The notes beneath the pieces were generated by a model, which ran no database searches, had not been told where the DNA came from, and was given only the letters and a program-made list of their open reading frames with translations. DNA of 64,000 bases, taken from the NCBI RefSeq assembly GCF_052425735.1, contig NC_135761.1:38502001-38566000 (forward strand), given 5' to 3'. A program made the position numbers and the translations under genes. Shown here piece after piece: positions 5,894-40,786 of the stretch; position 1 is the first letter of the stretch, and every line of letters begins with the position of its first letter. The stretch is from Oculina patagonica. Its lineage: Eukaryota.

Positions 5894-6104
5894 CTGAAGT
5901 GTTTGATCGAACACTGCTTACTCTACATCCGTGACAATTACACAATTTGGACCTGGACAAAGACGTTATGACATCTCTAAGGAGAGGGCAGCAAACAGAA
6001 GTAAAAGGATGCAGACGGCCAAGAACGAAAGTGAAGAACATTCAGTGGATGACTTGGAAAAGAAAAGTGAAGATGAAGATGAGTTCGATGAAGAAGTTCA
6101 GACA

Positions 6105-13089: not shown

Positions 13090-13224
13090 TGTTGTAAACA
13101 GTTTCATATAATTTATGTAAATTTATTAATGTAGTCAAATTAGGCGATCACGTGGTTTATATATTGCACCATCTTGTAATATCGATTCGACGACGAATAA
13201 ACATGTCTTGTTGTGTTCACTAAA
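13090..13224 (+). repeat. 5' LTR (135 bp)
   Basis: tgttgtaaac...gttcactaaa, identical to 18951-19085. Contains aataaa. Confidence 0.97.
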
Positions 13225-13242
13225 TGGCGCCCAACGTGGGGC
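13225..13242 (+). promoter_or_regulatory. Primer-binding site complementary to the 3' end of tRNA-Lys(CUU)
   Basis: tggcgcccaacgtggggc directly after the 5' LTR, the classical Lys1,2 PBS. Confidence 0.9.
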
Positions 13243-13257
13243 AACTTTTCAATTGCA

Positions 13258-16200
13258 ATGCCTCCAAAAAAGACTAAATCGAAGAAAACACCCGACAAAC
13301 CAAGTACATCGAGTATGCAAGCGACTACATCGAATTTGGAACGACTGCGAGTTATCCGTGAAGGACACCGACGACAAGTATCGAAACTGGATGAAGAATT
13401 AACCAAAATATTGCAAGGCGAAGACAAGGATTACGAACGGCTCAGTGTTATGAGACAACTCTTGGATGGAAAACAAGAGTCGCTAATCGAAATGGACCAA
13501 GAAATATTATCTGTATGCGAGGTTACAACGATTGATAAAGAAATCGAAGAGTCAGAAGAAATTACTGCCTCAATTATTCGTCTGAAGTGCAAAATCGAGA
13601 ATGCGAGCAAGGTAAACATGCCAAGTCAGCAACACGTGGGATCACCTCAAACGACTGCACAGCCAGTGAATCAAAATGCAGTCCGTACGAGATTACCGAA
13701 GTTGTATCTTCCGAAGTTTAAAGGAGATGTAACCAAGTGGAATACCTTCTGGGATTCGTTTCAATCGGCGGTACATCGTAACGAAGGGATTTCCAACATC
13801 GACAAGTTCAACTACCTCAATTCTGTCCTTGAAGGGGCCGCCGCTCGAGCTATCCAGGGTCTTACCTTAACCGAAGCAAACTACGACGCAGCAATCAAAT
13901 TATTACAAGAACGTTTCGGGCGTCCCCAACAAATTATCAGCGCACATATGGATCAGCTTCTCAAGGTTTCGCCGTGTTCTAATGATCGCCCAGCCAGCCT
14001 TCGATACGTCTACGATCAAATTTGTGTTCATTCCCGCGGTTTGGCGTCGCTCGGCGTAACTTCGGATCAATACGGAAGCCTCTTAATTCCTGTCATTATG
14101 TCTAAGTTGCCACCTGAGATCCGATTGCAGATAGCCAGGAACTCTAAGGATTCTGTGTGGAAAATTGAGGAGTTGCTAAACGTGATAAAGGTTGAAGTCG
14201 AAGCGCGGGAAGCAAGCGAGATGACCATGGCGAAAACAAGCGAAGGCGGAAAATCTCAATCGCCCGGCCGTGATTCAAAATTTCGAAATCAAACGCCAAC
14301 TGCGAATTCACTCGTCTCTCAGCAAGGTGGGAGCTTCAAAATCAAATGTGCCTATTGTCGAAACGAGCATTATTCTGCATCATGCGGCGTGGTACGAGAT
14401 ACAGCTCAACGAAGAAGTATTTTGGAACGAGATAAACGATGCTTCAATTGTTTGCGTTTTGATCACGAAACGAAGGAGTGCACGAATCCAAAAAAATGTC
14501 GACACTGCCAACAGCGGCATCATCAGTCGATTTGTTCCACGCTTGACCAAGGAAAACCGAAAGAAGTTTCAGCCGAAGAAATGAAGACAACGACAACAGT
14601 GAGCAACAAGGCAAAGGGAACTGTGCTCTTGCAAACAGCTAAAGCCGTGGCTGTCAACGATTTCAATTCTAAAACCGCACGTGTCAGAATTCTTCTGGAC
14701 ACTGGAAGTCAACGCACCTACGTCACAAACCGATTGAAATCAAGGCTTAATCTGTCCCCTGTGAAGTCAGAAACATTGCATCTTAACACTTTTGGAGACG
14801 AAAGATACACAAAGCAACAATGTGATGTCGTCAGCTTGCGGTTACAAGGATCTCAAGGAGAAATCGAAATATCTGCGCTATGTTTCCCAAAGATTTGCTC
14901 GGCGGTGTCAGCTAAAGTTAACATTGACAATCACACACATCTACAAGGTCTCGAGCTTGCTGACATCAGCATCGCTGAAACAGGTCAACAGGACATAGAT
15001 GTGCTAATTGGATCCGATTATTACTTCGATATTGTGTCTGGGGATGTCATTCGTGGCAGCAGTGGTCCTGTAGCAGTTAGCAGCATGTTCGGATGGGTCT
15101 TGTCTGGTCCCACAAGTGCTGAAGAATCAAGAGAGAAGTTTACAACTACAAATCTCATCATAGAGAGACCAGAATTGATGACCATGAGCCCATGTGACAT
15201 TCATAGTGAGAACGATGAGTTATGTAACGCCTTGCAGAAATTCTGGGACACTGAATCGTTAGGAGTACGAGAGGAACCACCTGCCTCACAGTCAGATGGT
15301 AAAGAGTTCCTGGAGAGCATTCATTTCGATGAGATGGAAGGAAGATACGAAGTAGGTCTGCCGTGGAAAGAAAGTCTTGTTCCTGCTTCAAACGAGTACG
15401 AATTGTGTGTTACAAGATTGAGACAGCTGCACTCGCGACTGAAGAAAAACAAGGAACTGTTAAAAGATTATGACAATGTGATCAAGGATCAAATCAATTC
15501 AGGGATTATCGAAGCCGTACCAGAACTTGACGACGACCAAGCTCCAATGCATTTCTTACCTCATCATGGCGTAATTCGCTCAGACCGGGAAACTACGAAA
15601 TTGAGAGTTGTATTTGATGGTTCAGCCAAGTCCGACAAGTCAACTGCCTCCATTAACGAGTGTTTAGAGAAAGGACCAAACTTAGTGCCACACCTATTTG
15701 ATATTGTGGTTAAGTTTCGAGGTTATCCATTTGCTGTAGTAGCTGACATCGAAAAGGCCTTCCATCAGATTCAGATCAACCCAGAAGACAGAAAAATGCT
15801 GAGGTTTCTATGGTTCGATGATATCGAGAAAGATTGTCCGCAAATCAAGCAATTCCAGTTTCGAAGGCTTGTGTTTGGCTTAACTCCAAGTCCAGCTATC
15901 CTGGCAAGTACCATAAAGCACCATCTGTCTAAGTACGAAGAAAAAGAACCGGAAGTAACATCTTTGTTAAGTTCAAGCCTCTACGTTGATGATCTGGCAG
16001 GAGGAGTGTTTCGCGAAAATGAAACTGTGAACTTGTACGACAAAGCACAGGAAATCATGAAAGATGGAGGATTCTCACTGCGTAAGTGGAATTCTAACTG
16101 TCAGTCATTCCGCGAGAAAATCAAGCGGGACGAAGAAAGAAAAGGCCAGTCAGTTATGGAAGCCCCTGCCGAAGAAAGCGAAACTGCACAAAATCTCAAG

Positions 16201-18750
16201 AGAGAAGAGTCAGCCAGTGCCAAAGATGTTAAACCGGAAACCGAACAATTTGTGAAGATACTCGGGATTTATTGGGATGTGATCCGAGACGAATTTCATC
16301 ATGACCTCTCTGAGCTAATCGAGTATGCAGAAGCCCTTCCAGCTACCAAACGATCTGTACTGAAACTGTCAGCTAAAATCTTTGATCCTATTGGACTGTT
16401 AACTCCGTTTACAATCAGCATGAAGGTCCTCTTCCAATGTCTATGTGTCGAGAAAGTCAACTGGGATGAGAGCTTGGAAGGAGAGGCTTTGGCAAAGTGG
16501 AAAACGTTCATTAATGACCTAAATGCTCTGAAGAACATCCGAGTTCCCCGATGTTATGCCAATTATTCACCGACGCAGTCAACCGTATGCTCATATCAGA
16601 TCCATGGATTTTCAGATGCGTCGGAAAGAGCCTATGCAGCAGTCGTGTACCTGAGAACCGAATTCAGCAATGGTGAAACACAAGTCAACATCATGACATC
16701 CAAGACGAGAGTAGCCCCAATCAAACGTCAGTCAATTCCCAGGTTGGAACTGCTAGGAGCTTCATTGCTAGCCCAGCTAGTTCATTCAACGCAGCAAACG
16801 ATACAATCCGTTCTCCCCATTGAAGGAACATTTCTATGGACTGATTCATTCACCACGCTGTGTTGGATCAAAAATGCTAAAGCATGGAAACCTTACGTAC
16901 AACACCGGGTCAGCAAAATACGAGAACTATCTAACGAAGCCAACTGGAACTTCTGTCCCGGAGAGTTGAACCCGGCTGATCTCCCATCACGAGGATGTGG
17001 AGGAGAGCAATTAGCACAAAACCAGTCATGGTGGAATGGGCCCAAGTTTCTGAGGTTATCAAGAGATCATTGGCCCAAGTCGCCTCAAACAAGTGCATTG
17101 TCTAAGAACAAAGATGCCCTTCAAGAAGTCGTAAAGAACCCCGTAAGTGTCACGCATTCTCTGGTCACGACAGAGTCGAAAGACCATTCAGTCAATCTCA
17201 GTCAAGTTATTGACATTGAACGATACAGCAGTGTAACACGATTATTACGCGTGACAGCCTACGTATTACGGTTCATACGTAATGCTAAGAAGAGTGTATC
17301 AAACCGTGAAACTCCCAAATCACCGGAACAGTCATCGAGAAAGGAACTTAATGCTCAAGAGTTAAATCAAGCTGAAATGCTGTGGATCAAGACTGTACAG
17401 ACAGCCTCATTTGCCAAAGAACTCGAATTTCTGCAAAGCAAAAGAGGAACATTCCCACCTGTCTACGTCACGCAATTTAACTTGTTCCTTAACGACCAAC
17501 AAATCATCAGATGTAAGGGAAGAGTAAGCAATGCACCGCTCTCTGAAGAAAGCAAGAATCCAATCTTACTTCCATCTAAGCACCCACTTACTAATCTCAT
17601 CATCCAGGATGTGCATTCCAAGATTAAACACAGTGGCATCAGGGATACCTTAACCACTATTCGAGAGAGATTCTGGGTACCAAGAGGTCGAGAAGCTGTG
17701 AAGAGAATTCTACGAAAGTGTGTCACCTGTAGAAGGGTAGAAGGGGCTCCATATAGACCACCACCGACTCCAGATTTACCAATGGAACGAGTGTCTCTGG
17801 ACCCGCCGTTTGCCCATACAGGATTAGACTTCATAGGACCGCTGTACATACACAATGGAAAGTCTTCAAAGGAAAAGGGCTCCGACAAAGTGTACATTTG
17901 CTTATTCACTTGTGCATCCACAAGAGCGATTCATTTGGAACTGACACCTTCTTTGAGTGTCGAATCATTTCTCTTAGCCTTTCGGAGGTTCGTAAATCGC
18001 CAGGGATTACCAGTCACCCTCCTGTCGGACAACGCCAAGACCTTCAGATCCGCATCCAAAGATATAAGGAAGATCATACAATCAGACGAGGTTATGCGAT
18101 ACTTAACTGACAATCGCATCACATGGAACTTTATCATTGAGCGAGCCCCTTGGTGGGGGGGTTTCTGGGAACGCATGGTTAAAGTTGTGAAGCAACCCTT
18201 AAAGAAAACAGTGGGACGCACTACATTGAACTACGATGAGTTACAAACCATAATGGTGGAGATCCAGGCAATCGTAAATGCTCGACCGTTAACATATGTC
18301 TATGATGATGAAGAGTCCATTTCAACTCCACTTACGCCCTCCCATCTAATTACTGGCAGACGAATTACCTATGAACCCAATAACCAGCATTTCCAAGTTG
18401 TTAGTGTCAACCAAACCTTGACAAAGCGAGCTAAACATCACCAACGACTGCTACAGCAGTTTACCAAAAGGTGGCAACACGAGTATCTTTTGAGTCTACG
18501 AGAACGTGCTAATGAGAGATGCAAGAAACAAAACAAGGAGAGCCCAATCTCAGTAGGTGACATAGTAATCGTAAAGTCTGATCTAAAGAAAAGAACATTT
18601 TGGAAACTGGGAAAGATTCAAGAACTGCTACCAGGCAGAGATGGGCAGATTCGATCAGCCAAAGTCAAAGTTGCTGGCAAGGGAGAGCGAAAGCCACAAG
18701 TATTACGTAGAGTGATACAGGACCTAATTCCTGTTGAAGTTTCTGAGTGA
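13258..18750 (+). CDS. BEL/Pao Gag-Pol polyprotein (DUF1759 gag, triple CCHC, aspartic protease, RT, Pao RNase H, integrase)
   Basis: LPKLYLPKFKGD..W..FWD; CAYC..H..C / CFNC...H...C / CRHC..HH..C; LLDTGSQ; YVDD; FSDASERAYA; H..H...CVTC; GLDFIGP / SDNAKTF / GGFWERM. First ATG at 13258 (MPPKK). Confidence 0.97.
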   Translation: MPPKKTKSKKTPDKPSTSSMQATTSNLERLRVIREGHRRQVSKLDEELTKILQGEDKDYERLSVMRQLLDGKQESLIEMDQEILSVCEVTTIDKEIEESEEITASIIRLKCKIENASKVNMPSQQHVGSPQTTAQPVNQNAVRTRLPKLYLPKFKGDVTKWNTFWDSFQSAVHRNEGISNIDKFNYLNSVLEGAAARAIQGLTLTEANYDAAIKLLQERFGRPQQIISAHMDQLLKVSPCSNDRPASLRYVYDQICVHSRGLASLGVTSDQYGSLLIPVIMSKLPPEIRLQIARNSKDSVWKIEELLNVIKVEVEAREASEMTMAKTSEGGKSQSPGRDSKFRNQTPTANSLVSQQGGSFKIKCAYCRNEHYSASCGVVRDTAQRRSILERDKRCFNCLRFDHETKECTNPKKCRHCQQRHHQSICSTLDQGKPKEVSAEEMKTTTTVSNKAKGTVLLQTAKAVAVNDFNSKTARVRILLDTGSQRTYVTNRLKSRLNLSPVKSETLHLNTFGDERYTKQQCDVVSLRLQGSQGEIEISALCFPKICSAVSAKVNIDNHTHLQGLELADISIAETGQQDIDVLIGSDYYFDIVSGDVIRGSSGPVAVSSMFGWVLSGPTSAEESREKFTTTNLIIERPELMTMSPCDIHSENDELCNALQKFWDTESLGVREEPPASQSDGKEFLESIHFDEMEGRYEVGLPWKESLVPASNEYELCVTRLRQLHSRLKKNKELLKDYDNVIKDQINSGIIEAVPELDDDQAPMHFLPHHGVIRSDRETTKLRVVFDGSAKSDKSTASINECLEKGPNLVPHLFDIVVKFRGYPFAVVADIEKAFHQIQINPEDRKMLRFLWFDDIEKDCPQIKQFQFRRLVFGLTPSPAILASTIKHHLSKYEEKEPEVTSLLSSSLYVDDLAGGVFRENETVNLYDKAQEIMKDGGFSLRKWNSNCQSFREKIKRDEERKGQSVMEAPAEESETAQNLKREESASAKDVKPETEQFVKILGIYWDVIRDEFHHDLSELIEYAEALPATKRSVLKLSAKIFDPIGLLTPFTISMKVLFQCLCVEKVNWDESLEGEALAKWKTFINDLNALKNIRVPRCYANYSPTQSTVCSYQIHGFSDASERAYAAVVYLRTEFSNGETQVNIMTSKTRVAPIKRQSIPRLELLGASLLAQLVHSTQQTIQSVLPIEGTFLWTDSFTTLCWIKNAKAWKPYVQHRVSKIRELSNEANWNFCPGELNPADLPSRGCGGEQLAQNQSWWNGPKFLRLSRDHWPKSPQTSALSKNKDALQEVVKNPVSVTHSLVTTESKDHSVNLSQVIDIERYSSVTRLLRVTAYVLRFIRNAKKSVSNRETPKSPEQSSRKELNAQELNQAEMLWIKTVQTASFAKELEFLQSKRGTFPPVYVTQFNLFLNDQQIIRCKGRVSNAPLSEESKNPILLPSKHPLTNLIIQDVHSKIKHSGIRDTLTTIRERFWVPRGREAVKRILRKCVTCRRVEGAPYRPPPTPDLPMERVSLDPPFAHTGLDFIGPLYIHNGKSSKEKGSDKVYICLFTCASTRAIHLELTPSLSVESFLLAFRRFVNRQGLPVTLLSDNAKTFRSASKDIRKIIQSDEVMRYLTDNRITWNFIIERAPWWGGFWERMVKVVKQPLKKTVGRTTLNYDELQTIMVEIQAIVNARPLTYVYDDEESISTPLTPSHLITGRRITYEPNNQHFQVVSVNQTLTKRAKHHQRLLQQFTKRWQHEYLLSLRERANERCKKQNKESPISVGDIVIVKSDLKKRTFWKLGKIQELLPGRDGQIRSAKVKVAGKGERKPQVLRRVIQDLIPVEVSE

Positions 18751-23319: not shown

Positions 23320-24780
23320 ATGACCAGCAAAGTGTCCTGGCATGGATCCAAGAATGGCAAAGCACTCCAGAAACAAACCCCATTCTTTTGTACAAACCAC
23401 AAGGGGAAGAAAACAATTAACAACCCTATTCATCAGGTTGTAGTACAAAGTCCTACCCAAAAAAGAATGCTGCAACAATTTGGTTCGAAGGGGGTCTGTG
23501 TCGACTCAATCCATGGTACAACAGGATATGACTTCAACCTAACAACCCTAATGATAATTGACGAGTTTGGATCAGGATTTCCAGTTGCATGGTGCTTGTC
23601 AAACCACAAGGACACAACATTCATGACAGTGTTTTTCAACATGATTAAATTAAATTGTGGTCAAATAATGGCCAATTGGTTTATGAGTAACATAGCCAAT
23701 CAGTATTACAATGCTTGGGTGGGGGTCATGAACCACCATCCCAAAAAGTTGCTATGCACCTGGCATGTGGAGGGAAAACATCAGAGAAAAGGTGAAAGAT
23801 GCCGAAGTAGGAGCTGAGGTGTACAAGATGCTTCGCACAGTGTTTGAGGAGACTAGTGAAGCTACCTTCAGCGATCTCCATAACAAGATGCTAAGCCATC
23901 TTCAAGATGATGAGAAAACCGCATCGTTTCACAAGTACTTTCTATCAGATTGGGTACCAAGGGCACAAGAATGGGCTTTCTGCTATAGATGTGCACTTGG
24001 TATAAATACAACCATGTACGTGGAAGCCTTCCATCGCATGTTTAAACACAATTATTTAAAGGGCAAGTTCAACAAGTGTGTGGACACCTGCCTCCTTAAC
24101 CTAATCAAATTTATCCGCGACAAAACTTATGAACGAACAATCAAACTAACTAAGGGAAAACTAACAACACAAATCAAAGATATTCAACGTCGCCATCTGG
24201 CTGCTATCAAATTAAATGCAGAAAATATCAAAACAAAGGAACAGGGGGAGTGGGAAGTTACATCTAAACACAAAAAACGGGTGTACAAAGTACACAAAGT
24301 CAATGAAATATGTCCAGAAAGCCATTGCAGTCTGAGGTGTCACTCCTGTGAAAATACATGTCCTTACGTTTTTTCCTGTACATGCATCGACAGCCTCTTG
24401 CATGGTACAGTCTGTAAGCATTTCACAAGGTTTCGATGTTAAATGCAAAAATTGACAAGAGAGACGTGGAACTGTCATTTCCATCACCACTGGACCACGA
24501 AGTTCTGCGAGGTAAATCAAATGAACTATCAATGTTGGTCGAAGAAATCAAGCAAACCACATCACATTGTGACATGACTACTTCAAAAGCAAAAGTACAG
24601 ACAAAACTGTTGCAGTTAATAACAGATGTTGAGCATTGTACCGACAAGAAAGCACTATGTGAATTAGACAAGGGATTAACTGCAAAACAGTTCCTTGTCA
24701 AGTCAATGCTGAAGCAGCCAGCCCCAGAAAGAATAGCTCTTAAACAAAATGTACCTGCCAACAAGAACTTGGACAGATAG
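23320..24780 (+). pseudogene. MULE/Mutator transposase with SWIM finger, frameshifted
   Basis: GVCVDSIHGTTGYDFNLTTLMIIDEFGSGFPVAW...LLCTWHV, then WAFCYR...NTTMYVEAFHR, then CTCIDSLLHGTVCKH. Frameshifts near 23770 and 24420. Confidence 0.9.
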
Positions 24781-26510: not shown

Positions 26511-28746
26511 AAGACTTGTTATTTTAAAATTTTAATTCAATTATGTGTTGTGTCATAATTGTCTCCTTTTTAACACCATAAGGAATTGGATCTCATGATC
26601 CGAGGGATCTCAGAAGGAAAATTGCAGAAGCCCGGTGCAGAAATTCAAGGGACCGTCTCTTACAACGAGCGAACGTTCCCTAAAGGTAAATTTATTTCAA
26701 AATGCAATCAAAAGTCTAAATAGAAATCACTTAAGTTTTCTACTTATATTTATACTTTCTTTCAGTAACCAAGATTAAGTGTTAAGTAAAGACGTTTCTC
26801 ACGAGATTAAACATTCTTCTCAAGAAAATTAAGGGACATGTCCTTTTTTGGGCCAATTATTTTCAAAATATCATTGAGCACCACCTTAAAACATCTGTGT
26901 TAAACATTTTTTTTTAAGCAGGCAGGTATTTATTAGGAAAGCAACAAAAGATTTATGCCAGGACTTTGTTAAACATCATATACTAGTACCTAGCAGTGAA
27001 ATGATGGCTGGGGGAGAGGGGGCATTAATTGAATTTCTTGAGCTTTTTGACATTTGCTTCCTTAAGTTTACTTCCAAAGTAATCATTTTCTTTTAAAATC
27101 CGTACATCTCCACTACAGGATTTGAAGAGTTCTTCTCACTTGCAACCATTAATTGCGTTTGTTTGTATTTTTAGCAGATGACACTGCCATAGAAGATCTA
27201 AGTGACAAATCAAAGTCCAGAAAAAGTGAGCTATTATCTTGTAGTAGCAGTGCAATTGCTTATCGAAGGTGGCTGAAACAAATCTAAATTCTTAGCGTTT
27301 TGGCTTTGCTTTAATTACAGGATTCCGATAGGCGGGTTTTTTAGCTTTAGCTAAAAAACAACTTTTGAGGTAAACTGATACTAATTAAGCCTCTCTTTTT
27401 TCTCCTGTAGTAAGATGTTTCAACTGCCGCGGAGAGGGGCATAAGGCCCGTAACTGCCCTTCTCCAAAAATAATAAGAAAAAATACCAAGAAGCCAAAGG
27501 AGCGAGTAGAAAGAATTGTCATAAATCACTACCATACGTATAAAGATAGGAGCTCGGCAAATTTTCATTGATCACGCGATTTTTTATTTCTTGTTTCCCT
27601 GTTTTATTTTTGTTTTTGAAGGAAAATAATTTGAAGCTGTCTTTTGCTTTCGAATGAAATTTTTTTGAAGTTGTCATGTCGCTTTTTATATTGGCTGAGC
27701 CTTTGTTGTTATTTGTAATTAAAACATCATTCTTAAACAATCGCGTGTTCTGTTTCTCGGTCACTAACCGGCATGTGGTGCTGTATGGGCTAAGTAACAG
27801 TATAAAGACTCCCTCTGCCCGCCCTTTTGCCTCCTACCCAGAGTCCCTACCAATGCTGGGGTCACGCTAACAGGAACTTTTTACCGTATTGTATTCTTTT
27901 TTAAGCCTCACCCACCCTATTGGAAACAAGTTTGTTCGATCTATTACCAAATCCTGGTCTAGAAAGACCTCACAGGGGTTTTCTAATCGAACAAAACTGT
28001 TAATTGGTTTCCAACAATAGAGAAATGTCTTGCTCGGCAAATTTTGGACAGATTTAAGAAAGATCAGGATTACAAAATGTTTCAAAACCTCAGACGGTGT
28101 ACACTTCTTTATCAAGAGCCTATCGTCCAAACTGAAGTGGCATTAACTGTCAAAATTCTTTATGTGCCATTGCATGTGATCACAGTGGAAGATACTCCTT
28201 GTGCATGTGATTGGTGTGAAAACGAGAAGAAGTATAAGCCCTTAGTGTTTAGATAAGCGTGAAATTTCAAGTTAGAATCCAGTTATTATTTTTCTTTTTT
28301 TTGTACTGCAGATAGTCATTTACCAGAAACGTAGCCACTCAGGGATGGGCAAGCTTCCAGGGCTTACCAGTATCAGCACAGGATGAATCTAATTAACCTG
28401 TTAGCCCACGTGCTAGAACTGGTAACCAGACAAGTAGGCAGGTCTTCAACTTCAATGTCGTGTTATTGGATTCCCGGAACCATTCCATCCCCAGGGGAAA
28501 TTTAAGGCAGCAGCCATGGAAGATCTGAGTGACAAATCAAAGTCCAGAAAAAGTGAGCTATTATCCTGTATTATAAAATGCTCCAGTTATTCCCAGCGCT
28601 ATGATTGGTCAATTTAAGTTCATTATAACTCCATAAAGCACTCTGCCTACGTCACGCACGTGCATTATAACTCAACATATGCACGCAAGCTACGTCATGG
28701 ATTTTTTTGCCGAGGAAAAAATTTGAGAACTAGCCTGTCCGCCATT

Positions 28747-29379
28747 ATGGCTGAACAATTTCCACGGTTTGAGATTGGGTTCGAATTCCTGAATACCAAA
28801 AAAAGTGACAGTGTTGAAGATTCCCCTAGTGAGGCACCTGTTGAAAAAAAGAAACGGTTTGCAGAACTAACTGAAGCGGAAAGAAACCGGCTTTTGGTGG
28901 AAACGCAAGAAAAAGCTAGGAAGAGCACGACAAATTGGGCTGTTAACGCTTTCAAAGGTAAAGAAACTCACAATAAATATAAGTTGAAGTGAACACGGAC
29001 TACAATATACATCCCAAACACTAAAACGTAAAACCGGTTTAATAAAGAAATAAAAAAATGACGAATAAAAGCATCTTACAGTTTTCCGTAAGAGAGTTTA
29101 CACCTGAGCTTGTTTACATTTTTGTCGACAGAAAAGCAACATTGCACTCGTTTATTCAATTAAATACATGTCTTCTGGCAGCTGTTGTGTATATCATTTC
29201 ACAGTCTTTTGAAATAATAATTAGTTAAAGACCGAGTTAAAACTATCTTTTTTTCTCAGAATGGAGTGCACAAAAAGTCCCTGTGCTGCCAAAACTAGAG
29301 GAGATGAGCGACGAACAACTTGACGACAGCTTGGCACAGTTTTATACAGAAGCACGAAGCAAAAAAGGAGAAGAGTACA
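28747..29379 (+). pseudogene. Crypton YR gene, 5' part (exon 28747-28957, intron 28958-29259, exon from 29260)
   Basis: MAEQFPRF...KRFAELTEAERNRLL...STTNWAVNAFK, then a GT..AG intron, then EWSAQK...LDDSLAQFYTEARSKKGEEY. Confidence 0.85.
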
Positions 29380-30343
29380 CTCACGTAAATTAAGGCATGG
29401 GTCATGACTAAAAAAATGCAAATTTTTAAACTGTTTATCCCTGCTTGGCAATGTAATAAAACAGTCTGTTCTGTTCCAGTAGTTTTGAAATGAAATGAAA
29501 CGTATGAAAAAGCGGTCATAAGTCTTAAATTTTGATTTGAATTATAGTGACTTTGCTACATTTCCAAGCGCAGAAATGAAGAAAATGCATTTCTTGGCAA
29601 GTTCTTCGCGTTAAAAACTTGCTGCAGTACACCTAAAGTGTTCCCATGTGGCCAAGTTTCTTCCTGCAAGGTTGTATACCGCCATTTTGAATTCATTATG
29701 CGGACCGCGTAATCGCCCCAGCATTTAGGTCTGGGTGCCAGCTTTTCTGTTGTCAAAGAGACGAACTGACCAATAGAATAAATGAATATGTAAAAGGCTT
29801 GGTTCCTTTTAATAAAATGGCGGACGAAGAAGCAAACTTCACGGCGATCTATGTACTTCTTTGCAAAATAATCAAAGGGTTGTTGACCGTTACTTTGTCA
29901 TGAAAAGATGTAGTTAAAACAATTATTTCTGCCACAAATAGAATCTTGTTAAAAAGGGGTATCTTCGTGTCTTCTAGATGTTTAAAGGTGAGAAATAAAT
30001 GCCTTCTTGATGTAAACAGGTTTGTTTTGTTTTTTTTGTTCCGAATTGTATTGCAAGCCATTGAGAGCCTTCTTTAGTTGTAATTTATGCCGGTTGGTGC
30101 TAGGCGCGTTATTTTGGCGCTAAAAACAAAATAAATTAAAACCATTGTCATGCTAATACAGCGAACAACAGCACTTCTGCAAAATAATCGTATGCACTTT
30201 ATAGAAAGATTGTAATTCTCCGAGGGTTTGCAAGAGGCTATTTCAAGTTAAGAGCGAGTTTAAGGTATATTAAGTATTATTTCAAGGAAATTATTCACAA
30301 AGCACTAATAACAAGAAAGCAAATTCAAGATTCGGCGCCTAAA

Positions 30344-33300
30344 ATGGCCTCCTACTTCGGATGTGGTTTTGCTCGAGTTGCAGCAAAATTAAGCTACCTG
30401 AAGCCCAATGGAAAGGTTGAGTATGATCAAGAACAGAGGTGCAGACAGTACTCGGGTATTTTTAAAGGAGAACACAAAAAACGCTTTGAAGTAGACCAAT
30501 ATTCGTTTAACAAGCGGTCCAAGAGTATTGTACTCCATTTTAAAAAATGGAAGACAGCCGAGAGGGAAAAATACATAGAGCACTTCAGTCCAAACAACTG
30601 GGAAAAGCTCACAGAACATGAAAAAAGGCAACATTGCCGTTCACAATGTAAAGCCTGTGATGTTCACCATTTCTCTATCCAATCTCTGTTTCCTTTGTGG
30701 GGAAACAAATCAAAGTCTGTTACAAATCAAAGTATTTACAAAAAAGTCAACAGCCGAGTCCTTAAAGAATCATCTGCTGTAAATGTGAAAGTAACAAAAA
30801 AGGCTATAAAAGCTGCCACAAAAGAAGTCTATGACAAAATTAACACTCCATTTGAAAAGACATTTGGCATAACTTTTGCTGTTGCTCAAACCAGTGTTCC
30901 TGAGCTAAATGTCCAGGTGAAAAAGTCGCATGCTGAGTTGAAACGAGAAAGGAGAAATAAATCCAGAGCTGACAAGAAGCACATCCAGAAGCAGTGGGCA
31001 ACAATGGATTGTGACACCATGCTTGGAACAAGGCAGACATACAGCCAACGTCAACAACAGCGGCTGTTACTTTCTTTTGAGACCAAACTTGATGCTGAGA
31101 ACAGGGCCAACAAAAGAGCACGCCTGGAAGAAGAAGGCCAGCGAAAAAAGAAAAGGCACTCTCCAAAGCCGGATCATCTTAACTTTGATAAGGATGGGCT
31201 CCTAGAAGAAGTAAATACAATGAAAGATGGAGAAATGGTTAGTAAACGTCAAGACAAATAATGTAGCCATACACCAAATACTCTATAATACATTGCTACT
31301 CCTCTTGAGTAACAATTCTCTAACTCCACTACATTTAATTCCTTTAAAATTAAAAAAAATCAACAAATGAATAATAAAATACAAATATTAAATTAACATA
31401 TACTGTACATTAGCTTCTCAATGTGTACCACTCCCAGACAACATAAACTGGTTGCTTAATTAACCAGTGATAAAACATAGCACTTATGTGAATAACATTT
31501 TCCTTTTCAGATTAATTTCTCTAATCTTGCTCGTAAATATGGCCTGATGGAAAAAAACAAAAAATGGAAATATGGTCGTCAAAGAGTTTCTAGAAAACAA
31601 GGGGGTGCAGTTGTCTAGATTTAACCACTTCAGAAGCGTTAAGCCAGCAGCCAGGAGAAAATTAAGACGAATGCAGGGTGGAGAGATTTCAGTCCCAGTC
31701 CAACAAACAAACAGTGAGATCAGAGAAACCTTAATGGTAAGTCAGGGAGAATTAAATAAAAAAATGAATGAATGGAAACGTTATTAAAATGTATTGATAC
31801 TTTCCTGTACAAATAAGTTGTAAACATACTAGGTAATATAAAATAAGCAAACAAAACAAGAAAGAATTTCAATCCTCACTAGAAAATATGGTACAGTAGC
31901 TGAAAAAATGCAAACTGATTTGTATATGCCTATCGATTTGTTATTTTTGTAGAGCAAAATTGAAAGTGGCGAGTACATTCTTGGTGAAATGATTGTTCCC
32001 CAAACAGTCAAGAAAGTCACCTTGACAAAAGAGGGAAAAATAAAGAAAGAAACATTTACAGTAACAGGCCGCAAGATTCCTCTTCTTGACATCAGAAAAA
32101 ATATGCTGAAAGAGCATGAGGAAATGGGTTTGATGCGAATAAGAAGTGATAGCGACTATGACTTCATGACAGAAGATGAAATCAGTTCCAGACTTAAGCA
32201 GTTGGGTGAGGATGAAGAGGAAGAAAGTGCATCCAATAGGAAAGAAAAACTGAAAGAAATTGAAAGAAAAAGGCACCTTATGGTCTGTAGTGACAATGCA
32301 ACTCTTCTAAATCATGGCCACATCCTACTCACAGTCAATGCTGTTTATGATGAGGCCCTTTACTTCACCAATGAAGAAATGAAAGGCATGGGTCAAGAGA
32401 ACGTTGATGTTGATGCTGGATGTGCAAGCTGCAGTGGAGATTCCAGAAAGTACAAACATCTTGCAGTTTCCCTCAACAGACCACACTTGAGCCTCCAAGA
32501 GCGCAAAAAGAAAGTTCTGCAAGGTCCTGCAGGTCGACAGAAAAGAAATGGTGGCATAAAACCCTTTAAAGACCTTCTTTTAGAGGAGCTGAAGAGGGAG
32601 TGCTCTGCCCGTGGACTACCTTGTGATGGTCAGAAGGATGAGCTGCAAGAGGTTCTCAAGGAAGAGCTTGTGGGATTCAACGAGTGCCTGTGATGATCTT
32701 CTTTGATCAATCAAAACATATGGCAGATCTTGGTTTAGGTAAGAATAGTGAATAGTGACCACATTATTTTCACAGGTGTGTATACACATGTATGTGTATA
32801 AATTAAATTACATGTAAGTTTCATGCAAGGCATATACAGACATTCTCATCAAACTAGGCAGGATCCTGAGAACAAAGATCAGCCTTTTATATACTTTAAG
32901 GAAAGAAGGACTATCAGAAATTTAAGTATTCATTTGTTAGTTGTTTTTTTTTTTTTCTTCACAAACTCTCAGCACAAATCATACACTGTCAACTATGAAC
33001 ACCTTGTTTTAATGAACACAAATGGTACATTTTCCCTGTTTTGTTTTGTGTGAAAAAAATTGACCAGGCTGGGTATAAAAATCATTGTTATCATCTTACA
33101 CAAAAATTAGTTTGACCTTACCACTCCTGCCGATTTTTTTTTACTCATGAGAGAAAAAAGTGAGAGAAACTAAGACTGTCAGCTAGACAGGGTGGTTAAA
33201 CACAATCTTATGCATTATATTTTAAACAGGAAATTATGAAGTCCTACCCACAGAGCCCCTCCATGACATAAAAGAACACATTGCCAATGTCCTGACAGAG

Positions 33301-35253
33301 TTGCCTTGTCACCTTGAAAAGGAAGAAAAGAAAGCACTTGAAGAAATCATAGAATATTCGTTGGGTGGAAAGGAGAAGAAAAGAGGTTGTGATTACAGAC
33401 TTGCAGCTGTTATAGTGGCTCAGTATTTAAGAGGTAAGAATCGTGTGCACACTGAGTCTCATAACATATAATACAGCTGTATTTACTTAATCCAGATCTG
33501 AAACATGAAATGGATGTTTCACTGAATTCCTACTTACATGTACATTACCCTGTTTATGAAACAACTGTTAACTCAATGTAACCTTGTTTATAATTACAAT
33601 GTAATAAGCTGTAATAGTAACAGTCTAATCATAACGCCAGTGTATTTAGAACTGTACAAGCAATATTTTAGCCTTGCAATGCTATTTAGCTATTCAAAAT
33701 TCACTGTTCTCTGCCTCTTCTTTGTAGGAAAAGTAAGACCTTTGGTACAGTTACTCCTGGATTCCCTGACAGAGCTAAGTAAACTTCTGTACATGCCAGC
33801 ACATTCAAGATGCCCCAAATTAGTTCTCCGCCTGCACAATCAAGCCTTCATACATGCCATGACCTGCAAGGAAATCTTTGGCGAGCCAAAAATTCTCACT
33901 GAGAGAAAATTTTATGGCAGATACTGGCATTCCCTTACTGCACATGCTGCGAAGCAAAGCAGAATTGTCTCTTTGAAGTCAACAAATACTGAAGAAGAAG
34001 AGAGACATTTTAATACACTTCAAGGTGTGACCAAGTTAACCAACAGGCGGCCAGGAGACATAATCACACCAAGTCTCATCCGCCTGCAGGCTGAGCAAAA
34101 GCTTGCAGAGAGCAAGCATGCAACCAGCAATCCAGTGAAAATGCAGGAATCAAAAATTTCCAAATACTACAATACCCTTCCACCACTCCCAAGCACAGTT
34201 ATTCCAAACCGATATATCATCAAACACCCGAAAGAATATCAGGCTCACCTGCAGGGTATCAGTGACTTTATTGCTTGTGGGGAAGGTGTATGGTGGCAGC
34301 AGATTTTGTCTGGAGTTGAATTCTTTGATGGTCCTAATGAAGCTAACAGCAGACCTCAGGGACCATTACTTCATCATTTCAGATCAAGCAACCTCCAGTT
34401 AGAGGAAGAGTACCTACAAGAGTGTTGGGATATGTGTCTAATTGATGAAAATATAACAATTCCTCACAGCATAATAAGAATCTACAACCAGAGGGGTGAC
34501 TGCACCAGAGTCACACGCACAAACTTCTTGTACAGATATGATGACAGTGATGAAGAACTAGGCAATGAAGTAGCTGAAGATGCTGAAACAGAATCTCTTG
34601 TAGTAGATGATGATGAAGATGCAGCAGAAGAGGTAACATTATTGGAAGAAGTTATCACTCCTGAGTTCAAAGATTTTTCTGGTGAGTACAGTGATGATGA
34701 AAATGATGAAGAAGAACTGCAACCTTTGTTCACATCACCATCTTTGTCTGCAGTAGCAAATAACAGTACATTAAAGAATTCTGAGCAAGACAAAAGTAGC
34801 ACTGATAATTCAAGTAGAAGACCAATTCAAAATTCAGCAACAAGCCAGCAAAGCAGAAAATCACTTTCAGATAACAGACCTAGCTCAGACAACTCACAAA
34901 GAAAAGAAATTCAAACAAAGCTGTGTAAAAATATAGCCAAAATAGTTGGCGAAACAGAAAATGTTTACAAATTGGACACTGCAAGACAAAACATGAAGCA
35001 ACATCCAACAAGCACCTTTCACACAAACAACTTCCAGAACCTTCTTGCACCAATGCAGACACAAATCCTGGCTCATCACACATCATTGAAGAAACAGCAC
35101 AAGGAATGGGAAAAGCAATACTTCCTTTAAAATGACTGCACTGAAGCGAGCTTAGAAGACCTTAAAACAGACAACGAGCAGTACTCAATATACAAAAAGT
35201 TAGTTTTGTGTGAAGAACTCTTCAAGCACTGGAAAATAACTGTCCATCTGTGA
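30344..35253 (+). pseudogene. Five-exon putative DDE transposase (RAG1/Transib/CMC-like core with SAP-like insertion and acidic tail), lightly decayed
   Basis: Exons 30344-31237, 31511-31736, 31953-32738, 33230-33433 and 33728-35253, all GT..AG and phase-compatible. Motifs: HCRSQCKAC, LMVCSDNATLLNHGH, GCASC, EELKRECSARGL..GQKDELQEVL, EPLHDIKEH, YWHSLTAH, NTEEEERHFN. Lesions: +1 frameshift near 31560, -1 frameshift near 32672, stop at 35128-35130, likely internal deletion near 32410. Confidence 0.75.
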
Positions 35254-35450
35254 TATCAGTGTGCGGTGTTGGTATGTTAGTTATAAAGCCAAGTAGTAAA
35301 TGCATCTCTTCATTATTCTTTCTTTAATAAGGCCTATGTACCCAAGATGCACATGAGAAAAACTGCTCAAGTTATGAAATCCAACAATTCAATTCTTCTG
35401 TTATAAATCATTCATCACTTTCCTTTCTTCTGTTATATGTAAATATATAC

Positions 35451-35763
35451 TAGTTATGCAACGCTTTCGAGTGGTATACTATGGAATATCCCACGAGTCA
35501 CTTGTATTTTCTCGGTATACACACGAGCCTTTAGGCGAGTGTGTATGCCAAGAAAATACAAGTGACAAGTGGGATATTCCATAGTATACCACGAGAAAGT
35601 GTTGTGTAACTATTTTATACCATGCCATAGAAAATACGCTTACTAAATTTCGTCAAGAATACAGTCGCAGCGCACTATGGGAAGGTTGGGTTGAATACCG
35701 TCAAATATACAACGGCTTTCCTGTATTCTGATTGGCTGCATTTTCTATGGCATGGTATAAAAT
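35451..35763. mobile_element. Double-hairpin palindromic non-autonomous element (Crypton-like MITE)
   Basis: Hairpin 1 at 35451-35612 (gtggtatactatggaatatcccac...gtgggatattccatagtataccac). Hairpin 2 at 35612-35763 (ttttataccatgccatagaaaat...attttctatggcatggtataaaa). Confidence 0.8.
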
Positions 35764-36357
35764 TACTTATAGGAAGTAAGTAAATAAAATGAACAGTTTA
35801 CTGCATGCTATTTACTCTAGCAGCCAGAAGAAAGAAAGAAGCATTTAGTAAAGCTTATATTCTCCTATAAATACCAGAAAGAAAAGGCCAAGTTAGTTAG
35901 GAGAACATTGAAGAAAATCAGTTTTGTTTCGAATTTGCATGCTTCGTGTATCCTTCTTACTCCCAGAGCAGAAACTGCTTTTCCGCTATTTTTACACAGA
36001 AAATCAGAACTTAAAGCCTACAAAGGCTTTAAATTATTGTTACTAACCTTACCTCAGTGAACTGAGTAAAAATAAACATATTTGTAAAGGCAAATGTTGA
36101 CAATCAAGCACTTTGTTTCTTCGTGTTTTCATTCGAAATCATTATAGTGACTGCCGGCTCTAGTAGTCGTTTCCACGGTTTCCACGTCCGTTTCCACAGA
36201 AACCAAAATTAAACCGCTGAAAAAGGCGATCGGCTCCCAAAGACGTTCTCTTTATTTGGCTTTCAAGACCTTATTTGGCACGAGATGCTTTTCCCGCCAA
36301 GACAAAAATTTGATGGTTGAAGGAGGGAAAGCTAAAATAATCAATATCAATTATAGC

Positions 36358-37582
36358 ATGGGTAAATTCAGAGATCATACTGTTGAGGAAATTCGTAGGC
36401 TTCGGAATGCGAGGCAGAAACGAAAGCGTCAACAAAGAACAGCACAAAGACTAGCCCTCGAACGAGCGCAGATTATGAAAGAGCGTGAACAGGAACGACG
36501 GATTGCTTCAGAACTACGAGAAACAGCGCGCAAATTTTGCAGAAAGTGGCGTGAAAAATGCCACGAAAATAATAAAATGAGACATCTCTTAGATCAATAT
36601 CGACTTCAGGTAAGGTTTTTAGCTTCTAGAGATATGCACCTTTCATACCAAAAATATTTCACCGAGTTGCAAATAGGTACCTGAATAACAGAAGTCACTG
36701 CACACACATCTACTTTAAAAACATATTTTAATGACAGTAAGCTTGCTTTGTAACATCAAGGCGTCCATCAATACATTTTAAAGTAATTGTTATTGTGTGA
36801 AACCTTTTTAACAGGGGCAAATCAATAAGCAAGGGGTTGCTGTGGAAAATAAAGTTAATAACATTAGTTTAAGAGAGCTTAGCACTAATGTTCAGCCATG
36901 CATCTCACTTGGAGAAGGTTCCTTTGGGAAGTGTTAATTGAAAAACTACAAGAGGATGGGTATTACTGTGGTCGAGAAACAAATGATCAATGGTTACATG
37001 CATGACATTATCAAAGAAGCACAAACAATGCAAGCTTTGGTGCACCCCAATATACCAACAATTCTTGATGTGCAAATTGAAGAAGAACCATATGCCATCA
37101 TCATGGAGTACTTAGGTGAGGCAAATTCCTCTTTCACAGTCCATGATCTCCTCAAAGAGACCAACAGCCTGGAGAAAAAGGACTGGGTCAAGATTTCTTA
37201 TAATGTTGCTGATGCCCTAAATCATGTACACAAAAAAGGTTTTCTTCATTGTGATTTGAAGGCTAATAATGTTGTTGTCTTCAAAAAGGAAGGGTTCTTG
37301 ATTGACTTCGGAAAAGCTTGTGCAATCACATCTCCACCAGCAAAAAAATACAAGTTCTCTTATCCCCATATTGCACCTGAAGTACTGAATGGTTCTCCGT
37401 GCAGTGTAAAAAGCGACATTTACTCGCTAGGAACAGTTCTGAAAAAAATTGGCTTGTCCCAGAATATTCAATGCATAACAGAGGTGGCCCAGACATGCCT
37501 AAATGACAGTCCAAAGCAGCGGCCAACACTAGTGGGAATACTAGCATCCCTTGTTTCACAAAATGATTTTCAATTAAATTAA
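36358..37582 (+). pseudogene. Two-exon Ser/Thr protein kinase (non-RD, HCD) with a basic coiled-coil N-terminus; transposon cargo; one in-frame stop
   Basis: Exon 1 36358-36609, intron to 36814, exon 2 from 36815. Motifs LGEGSFGKC, VVEK, IIKEA, HCDLKANN, DFG, IAPE, SDIYSLG. TAA at 36935-36937. Confidence 0.88.
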
Positions 37583-37914
37583 TACACTGCAGCTTTGTAA
37601 ACCAGCAAAACATTTTATTGACAATTATCAGAGTTGAAAACCCAAGTGTCACTCTCATTCCAGTGTAGAACTTTAGGTATTTTCTGAAAAACAAGATAGT
37701 ATTCAAGTTACCACAAAGAGCAATTACACGACTCTGATAATACCAATAGCAATGACAAACAATCTACTTCTATTGTTCTTTTTTAGGCAAAATGTGTAAT
37801 TCTTGTCAAATTATTCCACAATGTTTATTGCTTATCACACTATTTAACAATAATTTAGAAAAGAACTGATTTAGCTCCCAAATGGAAATTTAGTGCTTTC
37901 ATTGTTTAGAACTC

Positions 37915-38880
37915 TCCTCCCAATGATCACTTTCCTTTAATCTCACTACCTGCAGAAATATATGAAGACAGTCTGTGATAGAAAAAAAAAAAGATTTAAC
38001 ATTGAGTTAATGGCTTTAAGGTGGCTATGGTGGAGCTCTCCTGTTGTCAAGATGATTCGTCTTTTAACAACAGGCTGTCTGGATGTTTCGTCCTCTGGTA
38101 GTGTGCAAAACCTGCAGCCATTAATACATTTAGCTCATGACATGACATTTCCCATAAAAATCAATACAAAGTCTGCAGATCTTGAGAAAAAAGGAATTGA
38201 TAACCCCAAAAAGAGAAAATGTGTTGATAAATTATCGCCAAAAATATTCCTATTTGAAGTTATAAGACATTGAGTCCATATAGTCACAAATGGTAATTTT
38301 TTTTAAACGAATGACATCTTATAACTGAATAACAAGGTAGATCAGTTGTCAGCCAGTGAAACATTGATCAGCAGGAAGGGAATTTTTTAAGACATGACAG
38401 ATTAATATGGTGTTAGTGTGGTATTTTCTGAAAAATAAAAATTATATATATATATTAAGTCAATGGTAGTTCACTTCAAAACATGCAGAGTATGAATTTT
38501 CTTAGTGGAACCTTTGGAAGTTCTCAAAACCTTTCCCATTGATCACATTCCTTTAATCTCACAAACAGTAGATTTAGACATTTTTATTGAAAAAAAGAAG
38601 AAAAAAAGGCTTACTTCAAAAGACTGATTGCAAGGTGGCAAAGGTGGAGCTCTCCTGTTGTCAAGATGATTCGTCTTTTAACAACAGGCTGTCTGGATGT
38701 TTCGTCCTCTGGCAGTGTGCAAAACCTGCAGCCATTAATTTATTTGGCCCTCAAAATGATCTGCATGTTATGTTTCCCCCAAAGATCAATACAGAGTCTG
38801 AAGATATTGAGAATAAAGGAATTGGTCATAAAAAAAATGTGTTGATAAACTGTTATTAAAAATACTCTGTTATGAGACAT
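37915..38880. repeat. Imperfect local duplication (~615-bp spacing) inside the TIR element
   Basis: ggtggagctctcctgttgtcaagatgattcg...gcaaaacctgcagccattaat occurs at ~38029 and ~38643. Confidence 0.85.
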
Positions 38881-39758
38881 GTAGACAGAAGTCTACATCA
38901 CCAATATAGATCCAGTACAAAATTTGTCTAACGGATAACTAGGTAATGAGGACAACAGAATTGATCACCACAAAAATGGGGAAGCTGTGTTAATTAAGAA
39001 CAAATTTTAAATTTACATGTACTACTTTGGCCGTAAACAATCAATGAACTCTCGCAAAACAAGTTTCAAATCAGAAAATATAGAAATTAAATGAGCACAT
39101 CAATTGGAGTGTACAGCATAGAATGAAGAGTGTAATACATACACTGTAGTTGAATATATAGAGATATAATTGAGAGTAGGAAATACAGTATATCAGCTCT
39201 TGTAGTTATATGTGATAAATCAGCTTAGCCTTGCAGCCATTTCAAAAATAAAGAAAGATCAGAAAATTCTGTTTTGGTTTAAAAATTGTCCGAAGCTTAT
39301 TCGCCATCGCTTACATATGCTTTTATCGAGTAGATATCATCAGTTTATATATCGACTACCAAATAACTTTAAAAAGAAAGAGATAAGGAGTTTCAAACGC
39401 AAGCTGCCGAAGACTTTATAATTAAGCTTAATAGCTTTATACAAGGTTTATAGATCATATTTGAAAAATAACTTACCTTTATCACGTAACGCCATAACAG
39501 GGATTTCTACCAGTTAATCATCAAACGTAACAGATGCTCTTACTACATAACGCTTCTTATCCCTCCAGAATCGAATTCTGCATAAACAACGAACTGGATG
39601 AATTTGAAAAACATTGCTCGCATCGACCGCCATGTTTTTTCATTTTGATCTCGATCGGTCAACTCTCCCCAGGGTCTACTCGGCATAAAAATCCAAGATG
39701 GCGGCACCTTCGTAACCTGGCCAAAACAAAACTTGGCCCATGCCTTAATTTTCTTGAG

Positions 39759-40786
39759 CAGTAAATCGTCTCTAATTTCGTTCAGAAATGCAATAGAGAG
39801 GCATTTGAACAACCCACCTTACAAGAGAAGTTTGAAGCTGAATTCAGCTTCATTTTCAAGTTCCAACCGTATGCTGAACGCCAAAATCAAGAGCCTGAAA
39901 CTGCAAGGGAAGGAAAATGTGCAGCACAAAGAAGCCATCCCTATTGACGACTTGAAGAAATTGAAAGCTGGTCCTGTTTTGCGCCTTACAAATCCATGGT
40001 CTTTGCTGAGAAACGTGTGGTTTCATGTTGTCCTGTACTGGTGTAGGAGAGGTCGAGAGGGGCAGAGAAGTTTGAAGCCGACGAGTTTTGAATTTGCAGT
40101 GGATGAGCAAGGCAGGCGCTATGTCACTATGACCCACGACGAGACCAGCAAAAACCACCCTGGTGGACTTCAAGACCATTCCAGCTTCGAGAAGACGGCT
40201 CGTATGGACAAAACAGAGAGTTAGACCGACGGCTATCGAGCGCTGAGCTTGTACATCTCCAAGCTAAATCCGAAATGCGAAGCTCTTTTTCAGCAACCTC
40301 GGCGCGATTGGAAGGAATCCGCCACACACGACGTATAGTATGAATGGCGTCAACACCCTCGGAAACATGATGAAAGAAATCAGTACGGCAGCCAAGCTTT
40401 CCAAAGTTTACACAAACGACTGTGTTCGGGCGACAGCGATAACCTTGTGGTCAGAAGCCGGTTTGTCGGATCGACACATATGCCACATTTTGGGCCACAG
40501 AAACCCGAACAGTCTCCAGCATTATAATTCCCGCCCGTCGTCTACCCAGCTCAGAAAATGCAGTGATGTTTTGTCCAGTGCATTACAAGACGACAACCAG
40601 AAGTCTTCACGAAGTGATAATCCTGTTAGTGAGCTCCAAACAGCAGTGCCAGGCACAGTGGTGGAAACACACAACCGATTGTCCACCACTGCGATTCACA
40701 GCAAAATGCTTGGCGGCATGTTTAATTCTTGCACCGTCGGTTCGGTTCAAATTAATTTTTATCCGCCTGAACGCAAAAATCAGTGA
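39759..40786 (+). pseudogene. Crypton tyrosine recombinase (DUF3504-like), 3' part
   Basis: SKSSLISFRNAIERHL...WCRRGREGQRSLK...SKNHPGG...GVNTLGNMMKEIS...YTNDCVRAT...GHRNPNSLQHY. The R-K-(H)xxR-H-Y catalytic set is present, with H mutated to D. Stop at 40222 and a frameshift. Confidence 0.9.

Follow-up and report, generated by a model that had tools for sequence, protein, structure and literature searches.

A compact protein kinase gene maintained behind the transposase of a cnidarian cut-and-paste transposon

A 64,000-nucleotide stretch of the Oculina patagonica genome (contig NC_135761.1, positions 38,502,001 to 38,566,000; referred to as the window, in whose coordinates all positions are given unless another locus is named) contains a protein kinase gene that lies inside a 10.4-kb element at 29380-39758, bounded by 25-nt terminal inverted repeats. 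Read directly from the window sequence, the gene is a two-exon reading frame on the forward strand at 36358-36609 and 36815-37582, with its ATG at 36358. Exon 1 (36358-36609, 84 codons) encodes a basic leader that carries a KRKR cluster and the conserved motif FC.KWRE, and it closes at CAG/GTAAGG. Exon 2 (36815-37582), in phase 0 with exon 1, supplies the 255 codons of a compact non-RD protein kinase domain and a TAA stop at 37580-37582. Between them lies a putative phase-0 intron of 205 nt (36610-36814) of the form GTAAGG...AACAG, whose last letters before exon 2 are TTTTTAACAG. Directly 5' of the start codon, a block at 36169-36357 on the same strand retains 81-83% identity to L001 and L002, the nearest relatives among the loci compared below; DNA homology to these two loci begins at 36169 and 36178, respectively, after a poorly alignable spacer, and the block probably represents the promoter together with the 5' untranslated region of this gene.

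Exon 2 holds every catalytic motif of a protein kinase, namely the glycine loop GEGSFG (36911-36928), the beta-3 lysine of VVEK (36977-36979), the helix C glutamate of KEAQ (37016-37018), the catalytic loop HCDLKANN (37247-37270), DFG (37304-37312), APE (37373-37381), DIYSLG (37415-37432) and the subdomain XI arginine of QRPT (37520-37522). The 214-residue piece that follows an internal TAA codon matches Pfam Pkinase at E 1.5e-30 with 106.9 bits, the cut-off being 31.7 bits, and PK_Tyr_Ser-Thr at E 1.3e-25. Motifs and profile match alike thus place the product in the eukaryotic protein kinase superfamily (PF00069 / PF07714), and the complete compact kinase domain reported in the first-pass annotation, which had been made from the letters of the window alone, is borne out. 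The internal TAA, at 36935-36937 on the forward strand, stands three codons past the last glycine of the glycine loop. Since exon 2 aligns with L001 and L002 over all 255 codons without a single gap, this codon is the only visible lesion, as the same annotation had stated. Family members carry F, I, L, Y or V at that position, and contigs of three sequencing runs that are 99% like the window have a different letter at 36936 and no stop, so that the lesion is private to the window copy or to the individual. The window copy is a pseudogene copy, dead through one nonsense codon; the transposase of the window is broken over several frames, and the kinase has the one stop only.

The boundaries of the element are well marked. 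Its left terminal inverted repeat, CTCACGTAAATTAAGGCATGGGTCA, occupies 29380-29404 on the forward strand, and the right one occupies 39734-39758 on the reverse strand (reverse complement CTCAAGAAAATTAAGGCATGGGCCA). The dinucleotide CA stands just before the left repeat (29378-29379) and again just after the right repeat (39759-39760), which indicates a 2-bp target duplication, and the 15-nt core of the repeat occurs exactly twice in the window. Excising the element together with one CA joins ...GEEY to SKSSLISFRNAIERHL... in one Crypton-type reading frame. The interrupted sequence is a Crypton-type tyrosine recombinase element, found at 28660-29379 and 39761-40786 and split by the kinase transposon, with a weak Phage_integrase match at 40340-40783 in its other half.

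Inside these ends, blocks that match a transposase lie upstream of the kinase on the same strand: block A at 30344-31261, block B with a SAP domain at 31989-32693, block C at 33538-35130, and smaller forward-strand blocks at 31560-31739 and 33232-33435, with A, B and C in different frames in the window copy. The kinase comes next and is followed by the right subterminal repeats. Between it and the transposase, the spacer also houses a palindromic insertion resembling a miniature inverted-repeat transposable element (35440-35763), which lies outside the kinase gene. This insertion has 87-nt arms that are 85% complementary, a contig depth of 1e4 to 1e5 in four sequencing runs with many internal joints, and loose contig ends at 35440-35444 and 35761; an Rfam search of 35300-39800 gives sub-threshold miRNA-like matches on this insertion only.

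Relatives of the kinase reveal the same arrangement elsewhere. A search with the kinase piece returns about 62 sequence clusters of 120-290 residues at E below 1e-29, beneath which scores fall sharply to generic kinases. The flanking DNA of nine kinase matches (loci numbered with an L) was compared with the reading frames of the window. The complete order of blocks A, B and C, leader and kinase is found at L004 (kinase 51% identical to that of the window, ends at 1312 and 14293, duplication AA), L007 (51%, ends at 319 and 13083, duplication TA), L011 (47%, ends at 974 and 12895, duplication AA) and L015 (43%, ends at 3755 and 12105 with a perfect 25-nt terminal inverted repeat, duplication TA). 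L012 (39%) has block A and the kinase between ends at 5837 and 17873 with an AG duplication, L016 (44%) has block B/C and the kinase, and L002 (84%) has block C, leader and kinase on a contig that ends there.

The order of transposase and then kinase on one strand therefore recurs in eight lineages, the window and seven further ones whose kinases are 39-85% identical to that of the window, and in six of the eight, ends related to those of the window (CTCAGGT..TTAAGG) enclose both genes. The exact core of the window's repeat is absent from the other loci, whose ends were detected with a degenerate pattern; the terminus CTCA.G.A.ATTAAGG is common to L004, L007, L011, L012 and L015. L008, a second copy in the assembly that holds L007, has a different flank and a second right end. 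A gene model from Paramuricea clavata (P0198) fuses parts of the transposase to the YC.KWRE motif of the leader and to a family kinase, and the association of kinase and transposase spans stony corals, this one octocoral gene model and several assemblies. Terminal inverted repeats, 2-bp duplications, a transposase gene and copies in different flanks characterize the element as a class II terminal-inverted-repeat transposon. The first-pass description of the kinase as transposon-borne accordingly holds, given inverted repeats with a duplication here and in five diverged relatives and, in eight lineages, a location behind the transposase in the same orientation.

Some surroundings of these relatives are recorded here in their own right. 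The transposon at L004 sits between a family B DNA polymerase gene (DNA_pol_B_2) and a row of small genes (L004 1-1116 and 14266-20864), among which is one with a parvovirus-type phospholipase A2 domain; this copy looks like an insertion in a Polinton/Maverick-like or adintovirus-like element. Positions 16466-20864 of L005 are a right flank held in common with L004 at 99%. At L001, the conserved kinase block is preceded at a distance of about 500 nt by a 3.4-kb element (5242-8662), the inverted ends of which measure about 700 nt and are 92% complementary.

Comparisons among the copies demonstrate that the kinase has been maintained. The ratio of nonsynonymous to synonymous substitution rates (dN/dS), which the first-pass annotation had proposed to measure among element copies, is about 0.2 for kinase, leader and transposase. 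For the kinase it is 0.19-0.20 between the window and L001/L002 (dS 0.45) and 0.20 between L004 and L007; for the leader, 0.25-0.36 and 0.23 in the same two comparisons; and for transposase block C, 0.22 between the window and L002. Across the 62 clusters, and down to 39% identity, the family keeps the glycine loop, VVEKQ, KEA..MQ, LHCDLK.NN, IDFGK, HIAPEVL, SD..SLG and RPT. The reading of the enzyme as non-RD is sustained both by the HCD of the window and by the aligned family, since 53 of the 54 sequences that cover the catalytic-loop position, from 62 aligned, have HCD, the one other being P0054 with HRD. For seven elements, trees built from the kinase and from the transposase core recover the same three groups, namely the window with L002, L005 with L007, and L011 with L015 and L016, and pairwise identities are of similar size for the two proteins.

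These results establish that the kinase and its leader exon belong to the element as a fixed part, have descended with the transposase along lineages now 39-57% identical to the window copy, and have been held under purifying selection as strong as that on the transposase. Agreeing trees, similar identities, conserved motifs and low dN/dS point to one ancient acquisition followed by joint descent and not to repeated capture or a neutral passenger. Recent capture of part of a host kinase gene, carried since then as a neutrally drifting passenger, is scarcely credible to us. Such a history would accord with the stop codon of the window copy and with the nearly identical pair L001 and L002, between which dN (0.031) exceeds dS (0.012) on very few changes; an excess of this kind is expected from decay after insertion. 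It is contradicted by the ratio of about 0.2 between lineages, by catalytic residues kept down to 39% identity, and by the association with the transposase across stony corals, the octocoral gene model and several assemblies. Nor does a word search find any close host relative, and the profile search gives sister groups and then generic kinases. We therefore reject the captured neutral fragment, which the first-pass annotation had named as one outcome that would overturn its reading.

Taken together, we consider with good confidence that the window gene is an accessory kinase gene of a cnidarian cut-and-paste transposon with a RAG1-fold transposase, and that in intact copies its product would act for the element. 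Several observations weigh against this view. L004 and L005 are 99.5% identical including the right flank (the flank alone 99%), are not independent and were counted once. L001 (kinase 83% identical) and L003 (59%) have leader, kinase and the downstream motif described below, and no transposase within 9-10 kb. No ends were recognised for L001, for the left side of L002, for L003 or for L016, so that L001 and L003 lack a recognisable end pair, and the kinase module can evidently persist apart from the transposase. No kinase lies within 10 kb of the transposase copies from Nematostella (L013) and Hydractinia (L014), from which it follows that the kinase is not needed by every branch of the transposase; the transposase tree that includes these kinase-less copies is weakly resolved and does not tell gain from loss. 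Finally, the exon joint 36609-36815 is present in no contig of four runs guessed to be RNA, and the contigs 99% like the window span 36746, 36764 or 36766 to 37683 and thus begin 50-70 nt inside the intron.

The modules at L001 and L003 that stand without transposase exons, together with the abrupt start of DNA homology with L001 and L002 at 36169-36178, are also what one would expect if the kinase module were an independent unit, either a nested element or a host gene near which the transposon tends to land. Yet the position, order and strand of the module relative to the transposase and the right end are constant in eight lineages, element ends enclose both genes in six of them, weak collinear similarity to L002 runs on across the spacer, and the trees of the two genes agree. 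No inverted repeats, duplications or Helitron-like ends flank the module; separate boundaries around the kinase, which the first-pass annotation had singled out as evidence against its own proposal, are thus not seen. An independent unit is accordingly most improbable, and the nested element was rejected.

The leader contains 27 lysine or arginine and 12 aspartate or glutamate residues among its 84, with an isoelectric point of 11.3, one glycine and no proline, a composition in keeping with a long basic helix. Pfam contains no match for the leader at E 0.01, and at E 1 only noise. A basic leucine zipper was considered and rejected, as the basic run RN.R.KRKR lacks the AA..[CS]R pattern and no Pfam bZIP match is obtained. 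The leader is kept in eight lineages (the window, L001, L002, L003, L004, L007, L011 and L015), always 5' of the kinase, with the consensus M[GP][KR]F..T.EE[KI]R..RN.R.KRKR followed by A..[FY][CY].KW[RK]. The R/K-rich leader exon described at first pass is therefore real and conserved. The accompanying statement that it is spliced to the kinase stands in part: the splice sites are conserved, and the joint 36609/36815 appears in no read or contig. Splice sites were examined in seven lineages. In five of them a GTAAG donor in phase 0 stands directly behind the conserved leader, L007 and L011 having none, and a candidate phase-0 AG acceptor precedes VNNIS..EL in all seven.

A different reading of the same region would make two separate products, a small basic leader protein some 84-140 residues long and a kinase whose own transcript starts within the presumed intron. 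The contigs of three runs that start at 36746-36766 lend themselves to this reading, as does their depth, 4-25 over the kinase and 0-0.8 over the leader, and the leader frame stays open past the donor as a 142-residue frame at 36256-36684. Contigs, however, cannot show transcript starts. The kinase part is deeper than the transposase as well as the leader in three runs; this, like the loci L001 and L003 without transposase, could reflect either deletion derivatives in which the kinase is retained or kinase modules persisting alone. The residues beyond the leader donor are not conserved, and no ATG ahead of VNNIS is conserved in the kinase frame; the apparent M in P0001 stems from a GTG codon that a gene finder of bacterial type took as a start. 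Moreover, the sister families are single reading frames that join a basic or coiled N-terminal part to the same compact C-terminal kinase, and the Paramuricea model likewise joins basic leader to kinase. Two products are for these reasons unlikely. The single-frame sister proteins, the missing kinase ATG and the donor and acceptor sites support one polypeptide, and we infer that leader and kinase form one spliced protein of about 340 residues.

Searched against solved structures, the family profile matches CTR1 (E 3.8e-27), ABL1 (4.5e-23) and LIMK1 (1.6e-20), then ZAK and RIPK1. An AlphaFold (AF2) model of the nearest intact relative (pLDDT 89.7) adopts the kinase fold, with a TM score of about 0.8 to ABL, Src and LIMK1; it has three helices after APE instead of the usual four, and the domain is shorter. 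Foldseek ranks tyrosine kinases first for this model and returns generic kinase matches among viral structures. The catalytic loop HCDLKANN (H.DLK..N) is of the Ser/Thr type, and subdomain XI has the pattern C....P..RP. By its sequence, the enzyme appears to be a Ser/Thr-type kinase resembling the tyrosine kinase-like (TKL) group, without a specific home and with CTR1 as its best solved match. As all catalytic residues are retained, intact copies very probably encode an active Ser/Thr kinase of this TKL-like kind that needs no activation-loop arginine clamp.

The TKL kinases (CTR1/Raf-like, LIMK/TESK, ZAK, RIPK and IRAK) resemble the coral kinase in supplying its best solved sequence matches and in having a Ser/Thr-type loop. 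They differ in that identity to it is only about 20-30% and ABL and Src score as well; the coral kinase is shorter, carries invariant motifs of its own (VVEKQ, GVQ and KKY...HIAPEVL), lacks LIM, death and SAM domains, and is borne on a transposon. The Acropora millepora member P0048 bears the NCBI name 'dual specificity testis-specific protein kinase 2-like'. Membership in the LIMK/TESK family was rejected, since LIMK1 (1.6e-20) falls below CTR1 and ABL1 and no LIM or PDZ domains are present, which leaves this automatic name without support.

An exhaustive profile search, which gave 368 representatives at E below 1e-30, finds as best matches outside the family several sister groups of similar build and then generic kinases. 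The sister groups have reading frames of 330-475 residues with a compact non-RD kinase at the extreme C-terminus and an HND or HTD loop; their members include P0285, P0287 and P0296 as well as P0246, P0247, P0251, P0255 and P0259. The last five form the nearest sister group, with proteins of 400-475 residues in which an N-terminal domain (..FGKVVREAFP...R.RDGGGYIYR.L) and a coiled region are followed by a compact kinase reading HNDLK and IDLGK. Searching for names under P0255 gave, apart from four unnamed clusters, nothing but distant kinases of fish and sea urchins. High profile scores are also reached by P0243, P0244, P0249 and P0252, proteins of 1300-2900 residues with 5-10 tandem kinase domains; one tandem-kinase protein comes from the oomycete Thraustotheca clavata. 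These are probably not close kin, their scores being summed over domains.

Sequence searches of Pfam and the PDB turn up no match for the transposase, nor anything usable for the leader. A structural model of the intact relative at L007 4200-6428, computed with 45 homologues (pLDDT 83.9), finds 43 RAG1 chains at E 2.9e-8 to 1.5e-5, followed by HzTransib at 1e-2; on this model the enzyme is predicted to have the RAG1 fold, that is, a catalytic core of the RAG1/Transib type. Homologues of the transposase were named from Paramuricea, Actinostola, Nematostella, Oculina patagonica and Hydractinia. Transib and RAG-like elements create 5-bp duplications and have CAC-type ends (CACNGTG-like in Transib), and CACTA elements create 3-bp duplications. 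Assignment of the coral element to Transib proper was rejected, because its duplications are of 2 bp (CA, AA, TA, AA, AG and TA) and its ends read CTCAGG. These two features likewise distinguish it from RAG-like and CACTA elements, and no RAG2-like gene is seen.

Selection on a gene that travels only with a transposon is best explained by an activity that raises the element's own spread, and a mechanism may be outlined on that basis. The KRKR-rich helical leader would take the protein to the nucleus or to nucleic acid, or would pair with a partner, and the leader-kinase protein would act in trans for the element. Its substrate might be the transposase or the transposition complex, phosphorylation switching cutting or joining on or off; we place this at slightly less than an even chance. 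More tentatively, the kinase could be an obligatory partner of the RAG1-fold transposase, cutting or joining taking place only after phosphorylation by the element's enzyme. If this doubtful proposal is true, the element would possess a self-contained, phosphorylation-gated transposition switch, with the kinase in the place of a RAG2-like regulatory second subunit for a RAG1-fold enzyme and working via catalysis, not binding.

Alternatively, phosphorylation might be directed at host repair, chromatin or silencing proteins, a possibility we hold only loosely. As a host-directed effector the kinase would enter the nucleus and phosphorylate proteins of silencing, chromatin, DNA damage or innate immune signalling, whereby the element would escape repression or the cell would tolerate excision breaks. 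RIPK and IRAK members are also non-RD, and non-RD kinases such as these are enriched in innate immune signalling; the near-invariant non-RD loop (HCD in 53 of 54) and the presence of RIPK1 and IRAK4 among the sequence and fold matches thus favor an effector, and both the modules without transposase (L001 and L003) and the deeper kinase contigs fit a product useful in trans to many copies. The RIPK1 and IRAK4 matches, however, are no better than those to ABL, CTR1 or LIMK1 and reveal no specific kinship with immune kinases, and the protein carries the basic leader only, with no death, TIR or CARD domain. We regard the host-effector explanation as rather unlikely.

Downstream of the kinase lies a repeated 88-nt motif, present on the forward strand at 38038-38125, where it forms a hairpin, CCTGTTGT(19 nt)ACAACAGG, inside a 614-bp direct repeat, and again at 38652-38739. 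Traced across loci by blastn-short, the motif follows the kinase twice in L001 (11107-11181 and 11900-11976) and once in L003 (11459-11514), and it is found in partial form twice in L011 (11195-11214 and 11557-11579). In L003 the motif is 91% identical and the kinase protein 59%, so that the motif is better conserved than coding sequence. It has no Rfam match and may be a transposase binding site or an RNA element. Between 37683 and 38615, 931 nt of the window are skipped in the contigs from three runs that match it at 99%, which indicates that the number of 614-bp repeat units varies between copies.

Beyond the element, a solo terminal 16-mer, CTCAAGAAAATTAAGG, at 26819-26834 on the forward strand has no inverted partner nearby and is probably a remnant of a related element's end. 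The window further contains an open reading frame of 1845 residues at 13213-18750, retrotransposon-polyprotein-like by eye only, and a broken transposase-like gene at 23320-24442 with a ZSWIM1-3 RNaseH-like match.

Transposons that conserve a second gene are already known, and the coral kinase element is a new variety of these. Two-protein transposons include CACTA/En-Spm (TnpA and TnpD), PIF/Harbinger (with a Myb-like partner) and RAG-like elements (RAG1L and RAG2L). To the best of our knowledge, the accessory partners in such systems are DNA-binding or scaffold proteins, and none is a phosphorylating enzyme. The coral element resembles them in that transposase and conserved accessory protein are selected together, resembles En/Spm in having all genes on one strand, and resembles RAG-like and Transib elements in the predicted fold of its transposase. 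Fungal IS3EU transposons carry an alpha-kinase gene (PMC12730594) and so offer the likeness of a cut-and-paste transposon with a kinase as second conserved gene beside the transposase (PMC12730594). In contrast to the cnidarian element, theirs is an alpha-kinase of atypical fold, unrelated in sequence and in opposite orientation to an IS3EU-type transposase; the coral kinase is of the conventional eukaryotic type, has a basic leader and shares its strand with a transposase of RAG1 fold. For the mechanism proposed here for the coral element, Mos1 is a precedent: its transposase is phosphorylated and regulated by PKA (PMC3902898), which illustrates that a eukaryotic transposase can be switched in this way. 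There the kinase is a host enzyme, whereas the coral element would bring its own.

Our full-text searches of the literature brought up no animal DNA transposon described as having a conventional protein kinase among its conserved genes, and such a gene is unusual. Transposons rarely retain enzymes besides those that move DNA, and among the accessory functions of animal DNA transposons, a conventional kinase kept by selection within a RAG1-fold element across anthozoans would be of a new kind. Existing annotations label such genes as host kinases ('TESK2-like'), so that counts of the cnidarian kinome are inflated and distorted. Natural intact copies exist, among them those at L007 and L015, and they offer a handle on how elements of this kind control themselves or their host.

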